From Geosiphon pyriformis uo1 (Eukaryota; Fungi; Glomeromycota): 6,756 bases of DNA. Below are positions 1 through 6,756 of the stretch, piece by piece. The translations under genes and the position numbers were made by a program. The stretch spans positions 1 through 6,756 of the forward strand of contig JAAOMT010000113.1 of assembly GCA_016748015.1 (NCBI GenBank), in the 5' to 3' direction. The notes under the pieces were generated by a model. It saw nothing but the letters and a program-made list of their open reading frames with translations, had not been told where the DNA came from and ran no database searches. Every line of letters starts with the position of its first letter. Positions within the stretch are counted from its first letter, which is position 1.

Positions 1-172
1 TCTCAAATTTTCTACGCCTTTCCTTAATCATAAGTCGACCGCTTATTTGATGGAACTTCAAGATCCCAATTTATTAAATTTAACTTTTCAACTTGTGACT
101 ATATATACAACTTGATATTTATTAAACATCTTTACAAATAATATTATAAAAATAACATTTAAAGTTTGCTAT

Positions 173-601
173 CTAGATTGAAACAACATTTCCGCTACCA
201 ATAAGAGCATTATTTCTATAAACACTCAAGATATCACCAGCGACATTGACTCCAGGTCCATTGTTATCAAGACGAAGATCGGTGACATCAACTTGGAAAG
301 CCGAGGTACCCCCGTTCAAGATTGAGTAATTAATCTTATTCGAAAGACTATAACCACTTTTTGCAAATACAATACTATAACTAGATGTGCTGCCCTGGAA
401 CCCGGTATTGAATTGACCATAGATTCGGGTGTAACCTTGAGCAAGTTGAGTAATGGTAACACGTCCTCCCAATAAATCGGCATAAGCGACAATTTGGTTT
501 TGACGACGTACAAGTGGGCTTGAGTGAGTAAGAGTGGTAAGACAGAGAATTGCCAATACCACATATAGGATGAGAGTTGAGATTGAGATTTTTCCAGACA
601 T
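173..601 (-). CDS. Small secreted protein, 142 aa (signal peptide, SPLVRR propeptide, putative Cu/Zn-SOD-like beta fold without metal ligands), copy 1
   Basis: Intronless ORF with a hydrophobic N-terminus (LILYVVLAILCLTTLTHS), dibasic RR before Q, A-rich start context (acaaaATG), upstream TATAAAA and downstream AATAAA. The fold call is pattern-based inference. Confidence 0.9.
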   Translation of the reverse strand: MSGKISISTLILYVVLAILCLTTLTHSSPLVRRQNQIVAYADLLGGRVTITQLAQGYTRIYGQFNTGFQGSTSSYSIVFAKSGYSLSNKINYSILNGGTSAFQVDVTDLRLDNNGPGVNVAGDILSVYRNNALIGSGNVVSI

Positions 602-717
602 TTTGTTTAGATATATTTTTTGAGACTCGTTAATGTGTTTGTGTATCCTTTGTTTGTAGAATGAAAGTTAACTTTGTGAAAGTGAAGAAAGAAAGTAGAG
701 TTCGGGAAAGTGGAATC

Positions 718-724
718 TTTTATA
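718..724 (-). promoter_or_regulatory. Putative TATA box of copy 1
   Basis: TATAAAA on the minus strand 123 nt upstream of the ATG, followed by a CT-rich tract typical of fungal core promoters. Confidence 0.6.
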
Positions 725-783
725 GCTTTAAAAATTTCCAAATTCCTGGAGTAAATTAAGGGCGGCTTAGTTACTAGATCTTT

Positions 784-1035
784 TTAGAGGAAAGCCATGG
801 AGATCAACATAGACATCATAGCCTCGAGTTACGTGATCAAAGCCGCATCATACATGTTTTTATTCATATACTGAAATTTTCCGAGCCACCATAGCCTGCG
901 GCTATGTTAACACTCCCATATCTAGACAAAATTAATCACTAAAACATGATAATCCAATTAAAAGACACCTTTAATAATAGTAATGGTAATGATAATGACC
1001 ATATAATAGTAATTATTATTATATCTTTTAAATCC
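784..1035. repeat. Diverged inward extension of left arm (patchy inverted homology to 5741..5973)
   Basis: 874-933 (aaattttccgagccaccatagcctgcggctatgttaacactcccatatctagacaaaatta) aligns to the reverse complement of 5832-5890 with few changes. Further shared blocks: tagagga(a)agcca, tttttattcat, catgataatcc, taatggtaatgataat, atatcttttaaa.cc. Confidence 0.85.
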
Positions 1036-1657
1036 TACCTAACTTTTTGAGTATTAAGTTAGAATAATTAGCAGAGATAGTTTAGATTAAAAAATTTACC
1101 TATAGCAAGGATTAACTTGAAAAACTAATCGTCATTTCCTTAGTCGTAACTAGCTTTGTTTGAAGATTGAACTCTCAAACTAGGTCATAATAAAATAAGA
1201 AACCAAGAATAGAGAAAAGCTGGTGATTTCAATCGTTATTTTAATCTTTAACAGTTACCTTATTTATACAGTTTATTTTAACCTTTTAAGATGACTTAAA
1301 AGGATTTAAGAATAATGGTTCTAATTACTGTTTTAATAATTAAGATAGGATATAAATAAATAAATAAATTTATTTTAAAAAAATCAAAATTACGTTTTTT
1401 TTCAAATTTTCAAATTTTAACATAAAAAAGCAATACACACACCAAAAAATCTTGACATGTTAAATTATTTTATTTTATTTTAGATATGCAATAATTTTAA
1501 TTGTTTAAAAGCAATTTTTTTATATCAAAAATGAGGAAAATAAAATAAAAATAAAAATCATTAAAGAAGAAATTAAAAACTAAAAATTGATATTCTTTTT
1601 TTTTTTAATTATAAAATAAATGAAGTTTGTAAAAAATAAGTTGAAATAACAAATTTA

Positions 1658-1660
<3 letters not shown>

Positions 1661-1714
<54 letters not shown>
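1661..1714. repeat. (TAT)18 microsatellite
   Basis: Read directly; lies in a very AT-rich intergenic tract. Confidence 0.95.
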
Positions 1715-1715
<1 letters not shown>

Positions 1716-1997
1716 GTACTTTCTTTTTATTATGATTTAAAAAAATATTATATATTTTAAAAAGAAAGTATCACAAAAAGTTGATCATAATATGGAAAGT
1801 TTTGCATTTGTTTGTTGAATCAAGAACTTTTAACATGAAGATTTTTAATCCTTAATTTTGGCTTTAAAAAATCCGGATAGATACTATCAGCATTTGTTTT
1901 TCATTTTTTAACACAGAATCTTGAATGATATCGCAAAATATTTTCAAACATAAATCAATGCAAAGATCGAGAATTTTGTTAAACATGTAATAAGCTT

Positions 1998-2023
1998 TCA
2001 GGGTTAGGGTTAGGGTTAGGGTT
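1998..2023 (+). repeat. Interstitial telomere-like repeat TCAGGG(TTAGGG)3TT
   Basis: Direct read tcagggttagggttagggttagggtt; TTAGGG is the common fungal telomere unit. Confidence 0.85.
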
Positions 2024-2370
2024 TTTTAGATGTTTCATATGATAATTTTTAAACATTTTTATTTTTTCTAATTACATAATCAATAAACATATTATCGTGA
2101 TTTTTACAAAGAATATTTTTCAACTGAAAATATTTTCCTATTAAAATCTATTTTTTGTGATCTGAGAAAATGAAATAACAAAGAATTTAATTAACTTTTA
2201 GAGTCAAAAATCCATAAATGTAATCACATTTGATAATAAAAAGTATCTCATGCTTGTCTATCATCATATAGGAATTCTCTTAAACAAAATTCCTTGATAT
2301 CCAAATTATTTTCAAAATTTTAATTATAAATAAAAAAACAAAATTTCTCAATGAAACATGATTAAAAGAT

Positions 2371-2377
2371 TATAAAA
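2371..2377 (+). promoter_or_regulatory. Candidate TATA box of the lipase-like gene
   Basis: TATAAAA 133 nt upstream of ATG 2504, similar spacing to the arm genes; the AT-rich context weakens it. Confidence 0.35.
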
Positions 2378-2503
2378 ATGAAGTAAAAGATTTTTCAAAA
2401 CATCGTGAATTCTTTTAACGCTGAAAAATTTCAGTTCAAAAGATTCCCTGTGGTAATATGAAATTTCTAGAATATTCGGCCTGCCAAATATATCGCCTTT
2501 ATC

Positions 2504-2786
2504 ATGGGTTTCAAAACAAAATTATTATTGTCACATCATCGACGAGTTTTCCTTCTTTCTTTGATTATATTGTCCCTTTGGTTTCATGGAATTTGGTTCA
2601 TTTTCTTTTCTTCATCAAATACAAAATCAATTAGTGTTTTCCCTTTAAATTTATCAACAGATAATTGGTCAGAAGAATCAATAAGATTCATTAAACCAAA
2701 ACTTAAACCCATAATAAGCTCTGTAGAAATTTCGAAATCACCCAACCTTATTCATAAAAAAATTAATTCATATTCAAATAGAAAAG

Positions 2787-2818
<32 letters not shown>

Positions 2819-3986
2819 CCCCTAAATTTATTAGCCACTAAAGCAAGAAGAAACTTGCAGAGGAAGAACAACCACCTAACACCAGAGTTAGTAACAGATC
2901 AAAATTTATTAAGACTTTTCAAAGAAGCGGCTAATTGGTCCCAAAAAGCAGAATGTTTAACAATTGAAGATAGATTTGCTACAGGAATTTATGGTATGAG
3001 ATTTCTTGAAATGTTTTTAAAAAGAAACAAGAATATGTTTAAAGAAGTCTAAATAAAATTCTCTTTGATAATTTATAAATTAGCCAAAGGGATCATTAAT
3101 CCAAATGTTGTCAATAAATCGCAAATTATTGTTTATATTAAAGGGACACCACCCGAAATGAACTATGATGAATGGAGTAATCGAATAAGTGATATGATGA
3201 AATTTGCTGGTGTTCCAAAATCTTTTAGTAATGTTATGATTGATAAAGGTTTTCACAAGAACTTAAAAAATTCCAGATTCAACATTCTCGCATATTTGCT
3301 GAAATTTAAAGAAGATCCTGAATTTGCACCATTTGATCATGAATTTGTTTTTACTGGGTTCGGAATGGGAGGGGGCAAGTTCTTTTTTAAAGTTTTTCAT
3401 ATATATATATATACTCTGTGTAAAATTGGAAATTAAATTTTTTCATCTTTTTATTCTTTAGTATTAGCAGTTCTTGTCGCTTTGGTATACGGCAAAAAAT
3501 ATGATTGCATACCAACTGTAATTACGTTTGGATCTCCTCGAATTGGAAACAACTTTTTCACTGAATTCGTTAAGGGAAAATTAAAGGCTTATAGGATTAC
3601 CTATGGGGATGATTACGTTCCCGGTTTTCCAAAACGAACTTATCTTCACCATCCGACAGAATATTGGATCCCATTACAGAATTGTGATTGTGTAAATGAA
3701 ATCCAAGTTTACAAGTGTTTACCGTCTGAAGTAAAGGTTTTTTCATTCATTCATGTCGATAAAATATATGAGGAGAATCAGGTAAAAAATGTTTGTTTTT
3801 ATTGGGATCATGAATCATGGTTAAAGAAAATTACCTTGTCGAGATTGAATGGCTAAAATCATATATGTCTTACTCATATTTTAATAGAATTGCAATGCTC
3901 AATTTCATGGAAAAAAACCTGAAACAGATAATCATCATGGCCCATACTTTGGATTTATGATGGGAGAAAAATGTGGAAGAGAATAG
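2504..3986 (+). CDS. Class-3 lipase-fold (alpha/beta hydrolase) protein, 399 aa, N-terminal signal/anchor, catalytic Ser replaced by Gly; exons 2504-2993, 3084-3374, 3462-3781, 3888-3986
   Basis: Three ORF fragments plus a terminal exon join in phase (1200 nt including the stop). Motifs occur in order: IIVYIKGT, IDKGF, FVFTGFGMGGVLAVLVAL, VITFGSPRIGN, RITYGDDYVPGFP, YLHHPTEYWI, EENQNCN, NHHGPYFG. Confidence 0.9.
2789..2818 (+). repeat. (CAA)10 coding microsatellite (poly-Q)
   Basis: Read directly; encodes Q10 in the stalk between the anchor and the lipase domain. Confidence 0.95.
2994..3083 (+). other. Intron 1 (GT-AG, 90 nt, phase 1)
   Basis: G|gtatga ... attag|CC restores GCC (Ala) and joins the 2504 and 3065 frames. 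Confidence 0.8.
3375..3461 (+). other. Intron 2 (GC-AG, 87 nt, phase 1)
   Basis: G|gcaagt ... pyrimidine tract tttag|TA gives GTA (Val) and GMGG-V-LAVL, matching GxSxGGALA spacing. Confidence 0.8.
3782..3887 (+). other. Intron 3 (GT-AG, 106 nt, phase 0)
   Basis: CAG|gtaaaa ... tactcat (branch-like) ... aatag|AAT TGC; adds the terminal exon NCNAQFHGKKPETDNHHGPYFGFMMGEKCGRE*. Confidence 0.85.
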
Positions 3987-4584
3987 AAGAAGATAATAAT
4001 AATATTTGAAAAGTTATTTATTAAACAATCATCTTGGCAATGAAAATTATATTGAATATCCTTTCCCAAAATTAGTAAATTGAATATAAGATATGATTTT
4101 TCAAGTTCATATAGTATAAAATGTTCGCTCATTTCTAAGTCCAAATTAAACCTCTGGCGGGCCAATTCAAAATTGGTAATCTTTTGAAATTAACTCCTAT
4201 TTTTATCCAAATGGAAAAATAATTCTTTCAAAGTTAGATTGCTTCCTATTGATTATTTTGGTCAGAGTTTATTGGATTCAATATAGAAATTAAATGATTG
4301 AAGTTGAAAAAATATATTGTTGGAAAATCATCACGTGGTGATGAGGGTAATTTGGAAGCTGAGAAAAAATATTTTTTTTACAAAACTTTAATCCGTAAAT
4401 AAAATTCATTTCTTCACTGAATTTGTGGACTTGAAGACTTTGAAAAATACTCCTATACAGATTAGAATCACGTATGTATAACATCAATTTTACAAAAAAG
4501 ACTATTCGCAAGAAATCTCTAGGGTTTTATTCGAGCCTGAAATCTATTTTTTTTAAAAAAGTTAATTTATCAAATGATACTTTC

Positions 4585-4587
<3 letters not shown>

Positions 4588-4617
<30 letters not shown>
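4588..4617. repeat. (AAT)10 microsatellite
   Basis: Read directly. Confidence 0.95.
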
Positions 4618-4619
<2 letters not shown>

Positions 4620-4744
4620 TTGAGATTGGGTAAATAGAAATCGAAGTAAAAAATAAATAAAACGTTTTATCATTTGTGTCCCATTAATACTTATTTTCGT
4701 ACAATAAATGATTTTTGCGAATAAAGTCTGCTTTACATTAATCA

Positions 4745-5280
4745 TCCAGGTGATCGAAATCAAATGATTGTATATTCATTTCTCATTTTTCATCCTGATT
4801 AATTTTTACAGATATCAATTAAGAAATGGTTTCTTAGCACAATAACCGGAAATAAATCAATAATGCATAATTTAAAAGTGTCTTGGAAGTACTATCATTA
4901 ACCCCCTTTATTCTTGGATTTCTATTTTCTCCAATACATTTATTTACATTCGAAAAATGGTCCGTACTCAAAAAATATCTTGCTAATATAATGGCTATTT
5001 TATCAGACGAAACCAAAAATCCTTGATTATCTTCGAGCCTATTTTTTGTATCTAGTAATCCCCCCAAGTTTTCAAATTTCGTGTAAATCATTCAAGAGCA
5101 AACAATAACATCCTCCTCCTCCTCCTCCTCCTCATCATCATCATCATCATCATAATCATAATCAGCTTTCATTATTCTTGAATGGTATAAATAACTGGTA
5201 TTTATCGCAAGAGCCATTGATAAACCTTCGAATAAAAGAATCTATGTTAAGGAAGAAAAAAATTAATCTTCTAATCTCAT
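4745..5280 (-). pseudogene. Possible decayed lipase-like paralog (N-terminal portion)
   Basis: One minus frame runs 5241 to 4834 with a single internal TGA (5094-5092). A 1-nt shift near 4851 yields LLNYALLIYSGYC, which has lipase first-helix spacing, and TII*FRS follows at about 4771-4751. Confidence 0.3.
5111..5152. repeat. Compound microsatellite (TCC)7(TCA)7
   Basis: Read directly; on the minus strand it reads as poly-D/poly-E. Confidence 0.9.
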
Positions 5281-5740
5281 ATAGAATTAAAAAATTGATT
5301 ATTTAAATTCACATATTAATTTAACAATAATCAATCATACTAAAGTGATTACCTAAAGTTTCAGCACTGAATTTAACTCACATTTCCACTCTTTCGTCTT
5401 GAGTTTTGAAATGATAATTGTCAAATAACTATTATATCAGATTTAACCAGGGAATTTGACAAAAACCAATAGATGATTTTGTGTTTAAGCCAAATATGCA
5501 ATATCAATAAACTACTCGCTTCGTACAAGTAACGCTGCTTATAATGATTCAACTCTTTTTTAATAGAAAAAAGTTTTAAACTATTTCGGCTAATGCTAAA
5601 TAATCATCTGCAGCCTCATATTTTAAATTGTGATAAGCTATCCTATCTCCTAAAATAGGCATAATTAAAAGAAAATGGTCCTTCTTAGCAAATACCCTAT
5701 GTTTACAATTCAGGCCTGAAACAAATAAATGATGCAATAT

Positions 5741-5973
5741 GGCTTTAAAAGATATGATTATTATCATTACCATTATTAAAGATGGCTTCAAAGGATTATC
5801 ATGATTTAATTAATCTAAGCATAACTGCCACTAATTTTGTCTAGATGTGGGAGCATTAACATAGCCGCAGGCTATGGTGGCTCGAAATTTTTAAATTTTT
5901 AATTTTAAACTTCTAATTTATTCCTACTATTTAAAATGAATAAAAAAATATATTAAAAAGTGGCTTCCTCTAT
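5741..5973. repeat. Diverged inward extension of right arm
   Basis: Reverse-complement homology blocks to 784..1035, separated by indels. Confidence 0.85.
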
Positions 5974-6032
5974 AAAGATCTAGTAACTAAGCCGCCCTTA
6001 ATTTACTCCAGGAATTTGGAAATTTTTAAAGC

Positions 6033-6039
6033 TATAAAA
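6033..6039 (+). promoter_or_regulatory. Putative TATA box of copy 2
   Basis: gcTATAAAAg 123 nt upstream of ATG 6156, followed by a pyrimidine-rich stretch at about 6043-6098. Confidence 0.6.
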
Positions 6040-6155
6040 GATTCCACTTTCCCGAACTCTACTTTCTTTCTTCACTTTCACAAAGTTAACTTTCATTCTA
6101 CAAACAAAGGATACACAAACACATTAACGAGTCTCAAAAAATATATCTAAACAAA

Positions 6156-6584
6156 ATGTCTGGAAAAATCTCAATCTCAACTCTCATCCTATATGTGGTA
6201 TTGGCAATTCTCTGTCTTACCACTCTTACTCACTCAAGCCCACTTGTACGTCGTCAAAACCAAATTGTCGCTTATGCCGATTTATTGGGAGGACGTGTTA
6301 CCATTACTCAACTTGCTCAAGGTTACACCCGAATCTATGGTCAATTCAATACCGGGTTCCAGGGCAGCACATCTAGTTATAGTATTGTATTTGCAAAAAG
6401 TGGTTATAGTCTTTCGAATAAGATTAATTACTCAATCTTGAACGGGGGTACCTCGGCTTTCCAAGTTGATGTCACCGATCTTCGTCTTGATAACAATGGA
6501 CCTGGAGTCAATGTCGCTGGTGATATCTTGAGTGTTTATAGAAATAATGCTCTTATTGGTAGCGGAAATGTTGTTTCAATCTAG
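6156..6584 (+). CDS. Small secreted protein, 142 aa, copy 2 (identical to 173..601)
   Basis: Identical translation, with the same signal peptide, RR site and promoter/3' signals. Confidence 0.9.
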   Translation: MSGKISISTLILYVVLAILCLTTLTHSSPLVRRQNQIVAYADLLGGRVTITQLAQGYTRIYGQFNTGFQGSTSSYSIVFAKSGYSLSNKINYSILNGGTSAFQVDVTDLRLDNNGPGVNVAGDILSVYRNNALIGSGNVVSI

Positions 6585-6633
6585 ATAGCAAACTTTAAAT
6601 GTTATTTTTATAATATTATTTGTAAAGATGTTT

Positions 6634-6687
6634 AATAAATATCAAGTTGTATATATAGTCACAAGTTGAAAAGTTAAATTTAATAAA
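6634..6687 (+). terminator. Candidate polyadenylation signals of copy 2 (mirrored at 70..123 on minus)
   Basis: AATAAA at 6634-6639 and 6682-6687 downstream of the stop; weak evidence in AT-rich DNA. Confidence 0.35.
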
Positions 6688-6756
6688 TTGGGATCTTGAA
6701 GTTCCATCAAATAAGCGGTCGACTTATGATTAAGGAAAGGCGTAGAAAATTTGAGA

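Follow-up and report, generated by a model that had tools for sequence, protein, structure and literature searches.

A perfect inverted repeat around a lipase-like gene in Geosiphon pyriformis, probably an ordinary inverted gene duplication written out as an unplaced assembly loop

The window analysed here is the whole of a small contig, 6,756 bp in length, from the genome assembly of the fungus Geosiphon pyriformis (JAAOMT010000113.1, positions 1–6756, hereafter C99), and the assembly against which it was searched comprises 128 Mb in 792 contigs. C99 begins and ends with the two arms of a perfect inverted repeat, each of them containing a complete gene for a small secreted protein, and a lipase-like gene lies in the spacer between the arms. 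Because the window is the entire contig, the ends of the repeat are also the ends of the contig. We consider that the structure is probably real, an inverted gene duplication of an ordinary kind in which gene conversion probably took part, and that the assembler wrote it out as a loop without a place in the larger contigs.

The left arm (1–783) is the exact reverse complement of the right arm (5974–6756), which gives the perfect inverted repeat a length of exactly 783 nt, and the interval between the perfect arms is 5,190 nt. The first mismatch is found at position 784, followed by an indel at about 791, with near-identity extending to about 797. Each arm includes an open reading frame (ORF) of 142 codons, together with 182 bp upstream and 172 bp downstream of it; the two copies, located at 173–601 on the minus strand and at 6156–6584 on the plus strand, encode identical proteins of 142 amino acids and face outward. 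Most of what an earlier note had claimed from the letters of this contig is borne out by these results. The arms, described there as at least 783 bp long without a detected mismatch, are identical at 783 of 783 positions and diverge from 784 onwards; the whole secreted-protein gene is present in each of them in the outward orientation, as had been proposed; the enclosed gene, called lipase-like in the note, yields matches to Lipase_3 (PF01764) at 3065–3436 and 3482–3856; and, in agreement with its statement that no transposase or recombinase ORF is visible inside, no ORF of the window has a Pfam match to either type of enzyme.

The sequences immediately inside the arms provide the principal argument that two arms exist in the genome. 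The left inner flank (784–1035) consists of one mismatch and one indel, about 75 nt that cannot be aligned and about 165 nt of old homology, and its diverged inverted counterpart is the right inner flank (5722–5973). Alignment of the two flanks over positions 784–1040 gives an overall identity of about 68% and 36 gap columns; there is an 18-nt indel, and a 61-nt core (874–934) is 92% identical to its partner on the right. Within the unalignable stretch of about 75 nt beside the arm, the left side is GC-richer and the right side very AT-rich. Since the two inner junctions differ from each other and yet are diverged homologues, two physical copies of the arm are needed to account for them, and we think, on the basis of this comparison, that two separate inverted arm copies with a long separate history do exist. 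The inverted duplication, which would span at least about 1,035 nt on each side, appears to be old, because the promoter-distal flanks have diverged from each other and accumulated indels. The 783 of 783 identical positions in the arms stand against 92% identity in the most similar neighbouring block and about 68% over 784–1040, a contrast to be read with the qualification that the arms are probably one collapsed edge of the assembly graph. Gene conversion from arm to arm is the usual cause of such a step in identity, and it is most likely by this route that the gene-centred 783-nt tract was homogenised at a later time.

A search of the genome with the arm located it three times in the assembly, namely at both ends of C99 and at C726:823687–824469. 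The latter copy, identical to the left arm, forms the very end of contig C726, which is 824,469 bp long: its last 783 bases correspond to window positions 1–783 and to no more, so that C726 stops at the last base common to the arms. The earlier note had suggested a BLAST search with the arms for further copies; the third copy was found only at the C726 end, leaving a single locus, and the outermost 100 arm bases revealed nothing beyond the three known copies in the whole genome at E ≤ 10. Both the spacer and the 4 kb of C726 preceding the arm are unique in the 128-Mb genome. The right arm reaches the contig end, and the second outer flank could not be found in the assembly with the whole arm, its outermost 100 bases or the 4-kb C726 flank as queries. 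Straddling the outer arm boundary, a hairpin (10-bp stem, 20-nt loop) was observed at C726:823672–823711 (9203–9242 in L016, the locus at the C726 end), in which the stem halves lie 6–15 nt outside and 16–25 nt inside the arm; its position may be a coincidence.

The occurrence of the arm in triplicate at contig ends is the signature of a single repeat edge in the assembly graph that was written three times, and a contig break placed exactly at the last shared base is expected from a graph of the de Bruijn type, and not from overlap-based long-read contigs. A paper by the same group (PMC9453076), in the part that concerns assembly, names metaSPAdes assembly and CONCOCT binning “as described previously”, with a citation of the Geosiphon genome paper, and it lists the Geosiphon assembly at 129 Mb in 795 scaffolds, with an N50 of 703 kb. 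We infer that the assembler was of the k-mer-graph type. If one repeat edge was written three times, then the 100% identity of the arms and their length of “at least 783” are in part properties of the assembly: the perfect identity would largely follow from how the sequence was built, and any minor true differences between the arms could have been lost by collapse. Entry into one repeat edge from both spacer ends would, moreover, give the same graph for either orientation of the spacer or for a mixture of the two. A fork at arm position 1 would imply that the second outer flank is unlike C726.

These observations can be combined as follows in the explanation that we favour. A head-to-head inverted duplication of the secreted-protein gene would flank the lipase-like gene and adjoin the sequence that ends C726, and gene conversion would have made a 783-bp tract, composed of the gene with its 182 bp upstream and 172 bp downstream, identical in both copies. 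A k-mer-graph assembler would then have collapsed the identical tracts into one repeat edge and been unable to thread reads through it; the spacer would have been written with the repeat edge at both of its ends, yielding the free 6.8-kb contig C99, and C726 would have been extended into the same repeat edge and stopped at the fork, with the second outer flank lying beyond the assembly. There is a close parallel in plastid genomes, in which the small single-copy region between collapsed inverted repeats forms an unresolved loop in de Bruijn-graph assemblies: there, as here, the same repeat edge is present at both ends, the neighbouring contig ends in it, and the break falls at the first differing base. 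This likeness concerns the record; it implies a real inverted repeat and is silent on inversion. With regard to the biology, human Y-chromosome palindromes and plastid inverted repeats are known cases in which inverted arms are kept identical by gene conversion. C99 resembles them in its near-identical gene-bearing inverted arms, unique spacer, abrupt drop in identity and older homology alongside, and differs from them in being tiny (one gene, 783 bp), in that the identity of its arms is tied to the assembly, and in that its outer boundary can be seen on one side only.

Several points weigh against this explanation. The type of assembler is deduced by way of a related paper that cites the genome paper. 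The assembly gives the loop only one exit, as no contig bears the outer flank of the second arm. The 100% identity that lies behind the argument for gene conversion is not independent evidence, because the arm copies probably derive from one graph edge. Finally, an N50 of 703 kb presumably implies long-range data capable of spanning 783 bp, and yet the repeat was left unresolved.

The same facts can be read in other ways. It might be supposed that there is only one real arm, situated at the end of C726, and that the second arm of C99 arose by over-extension of a graph path or from chimeric reads; the identity of all three arm copies and their location at contig ends, the absence of the second outer flank from the assembly, and the recurrence in it of contigs bracketed by inverted repeats (such as C310, see below) would all agree with this. 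However, the unique spacer enters the arm at its two ends through different, mutually homologous sequences, one arm copy could not sit at the two ends of a single spacer in opposing orientations, and an ancient, indel-rich homologue of the promoter-distal region is not what a chimera would produce, so that we regard an artefact of this kind as unlikely. Very doubtful, in our opinion, is a longer palindrome, in which both arms would continue into C726 sequence, the outer arms having been collapsed and C99 representing the central loop. It would explain why C726 is the only exit from the loop in the assembly, but C99 stops at the same arm position at both ends, which in a graph assembly marks a branch point at which the outer flanks differ, whereas a perfect continuation would give no cause for a contig to end at that base; nor does the assembly contain a diverged second copy of the 4-kb C726 flank. 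A linear plasmid with terminal inverted repeats was rejected, given that in C726 the arm continues into chromosomal sequence and that the genes are of the spliced nuclear type.

Two further readings, both put forward in the earlier note, attribute an activity to the repeat itself, and neither of them gains support here. Recombination between the arms could flip the 5.2-kb spacer, with both isomers coexisting among the nuclei of this coenocytic fungus or among strains. Homologous recombination can act on perfect inverted arms separated by 5.2 kb, and arms that conversion keeps identical would have to interact; a mixture of isomers would also break the contigs at each arm boundary, and conflicting spanning evidence would fit the fact that so short a repeat stayed unresolved in spite of the 703-kb N50. 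A single orientation, though, gives the same graph if reads do not span 783 bp, the window has no recombinase gene, and Ambispora leptoticha has a single copy of the arm gene, with neither an inverted partner nor a lipase-like gene on its 11.7-kb contig. Because the identical arms contain the genes whole, each with its 182 bp of upstream sequence, inversion is predicted to leave the arm genes unchanged, and would alter only the distal flank beside each identical gene and the direction of the lipase-like gene, with no switchable product apparent. In Ogataea polymorpha and Komagataella phaffii, recombination between inverted repeats brings about flip/flop mating-type switching, and C99 is similar insofar as its inverted repeats enclose a segment open to inversion by homologous recombination; in contrast to the yeasts, it has no MAT genes and no silencing region known beside either arm, and its arms hold complete identical genes, so that no exchange of expressed and silent copies would take place upon inversion. 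We therefore consider an invertible segment quite improbable, and assign no better chance to its corollary that a mixture of isomers caused the locus to remain a free loop while the assembly is otherwise contiguous. Still less can be said for a non-autonomous transposon with long terminal inverted repeats, or foldback element, carrying the lipase-like gene as cargo, an idea to which we give almost no credence. The earlier note had offered it as an alternative, and C99 does share with such elements the long terminal inverted repeats around a cargo and the absence of a transposase between them. The proposal founders on copy number, as the arm occurs only at this locus and neither arm nor spacer has any further copy in 128 Mb; in addition, what makes up the arms is an entire host gene, of which a tandem paralogue lies just beyond the supposed element, no ORF has a Pfam transposase, and the ends are contig ends and not demonstrated element ends.

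The protein encoded in the arms has a signal peptide or N-terminal hydrophobic helix and a core that is conserved in the family alignment, in which a dibasic RR/KR site immediately downstream of the signal peptide contains an invariant Arg; this site resembles those of Kex2-processed fungal secreted proteins. There is no Pfam match for the protein, and in particular none to Sod_Cu. Its structural model, built on a shallow alignment, has a pLDDT (predicted local distance difference test) value of 85.7, and among the Foldseek matches listed from the PDB (ranks 1–50) all are Cu/Zn superoxide dismutases (SODs), with probabilities of 0.96–1.00; the target-normalised TM (template modelling) score reaches 0.70, the best E-value is only 1.8e-3, and the best match is a loop-deleted SOD monomer. 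A language-model search retrieved uncharacterised Mucoromycota clusters and, weakly, Sod_Cu. The mature protein has no His and no Cys, and consequently none of the histidine metal ligands of Cu/Zn SODs. According to the model, then, the arm protein is predicted to adopt the SOD fold, a Cu/Zn-SOD-like beta barrel, and would have no metal site, since its mature part is devoid of both residues.

The word search recovered, as relatives, a Geosiphon paralogue of 213 aa and two proteins from Ambispora, and in sequence searches the family has so far been found only in Geosiphon and Ambispora. Within the assembly, a 60%-identical paralogue is located at C726:822033–822398, 1.5 kb beyond the arm on the same strand, a 37%-identical one is found on C418, and another, distant one on C348. 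The arm gene is an ordinary member of a small local gene family. The A. leptoticha gene is situated beside a DNA methylase gene and, because it stands alone there, the arrangement seen in C99 is not conserved. We also considered two possible identities for the 61-nt core of the inner flanks, and rejected both: with regard to a common promoter element, it is not present upstream of the paralogues or of the Ambispora gene; as an RNA gene it has no Rfam match, the only match, to snoR41, being sub-threshold and elsewhere.

The lipase-like gene occupies 2504–3856 on the plus strand and is made up of three ORF pieces in the same frame (2504–3052, 3065–3436 and 3482–3856), which were searched piece by piece. 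The piece at 3482–3856 matches PF01764 with E = 1.7e-8 and 34.9 bits, above the cut-off of 22 bits, and the match of the piece at 3065–3436 is weak, at 15.2 bits. The nucleophile elbow (3350–3380) reads G-F-G-M-G-G, with Gly in place of the catalytic Ser of G-x-S-x-G; the motif and the Pfam coordinates together served to place it, the profile match ending at position 75 on the elbow. A sequence search of the PDB with the piece at 3065–3379 returned no lipase, and the Ser-to-Gly call rests on motif position. A lipase-like paralogue is present on C726, about 7 kb from the arm (L016:1500–2400), and its elbow (L016:1790–1815), reading G-H-G-L-G-G, likewise has Gly, so that the pair suggests a non-catalytic lipase-like subfamily. 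The first two pieces are separated by an in-frame TAA (3053–3055), a possible sign of a very short intron or of a pseudogene, and a probable GC-AG intron with a GCAAGT donor directly follows the elbow, within 3376–3480. The end of C726 thus holds a second set of both gene types, the SOD-fold secreted-protein paralogue (L016:7564–7950) and the lipase-like paralogue, and local duplication seems to have affected both gene families together.

Elsewhere in the spacer, four perfect telomere-type TTAGGG units are found at 2000–2023 on the plus strand, some 480 nt before the start codon of the lipase-like gene. Three or more such units occur in none of about 55 other loci examined from the Geosiphon genome, and the units may represent a promoter element or a short stretch of interstitial telomeric repeat. 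The remaining spacer (3857–5721) has no recognisable gene and contains ATA, TCC and TCA microsatellites; none of the ORFs of at least 40 aa in 3900–5964 has a credible Pfam match, and no homologue was found for the 85-aa ORF at 4834–5091.

Another contig, C310 (1–22746), is likewise bracketed by inverted gene copies, judged from match tables. Its Myb-domain matches, at 75–206 on the minus strand and 22541–22672 on the plus strand, have equal Pfam scores and mirror coordinates summing to 22,747, and the Myb genes themselves extend past the contig at either end (3–533, minus; 22196–22744, plus). These genes belong to a large family with clusters on C507, C520, C669, C596 and C788. Contigs bracketed by both orientations of one repeat are thus a recurring product of this Geosiphon assembly.

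It should be kept in mind when using this assembly that small Geosiphon contigs with perfect inverted ends are written-out graph loops, in which neither the arms nor their perfect identity should be taken at face value, and C310 should be read in the same way as C99. If it were true that both orientations of the spacer occur, they would represent simple somatic structural heterogeneity among glomeromycotan nuclei, still without an apparent functional switch. As far as the biology of the locus is concerned, the secreted-protein genes of C99 would add to the known examples of inverted gene pairs that evolve in concert.

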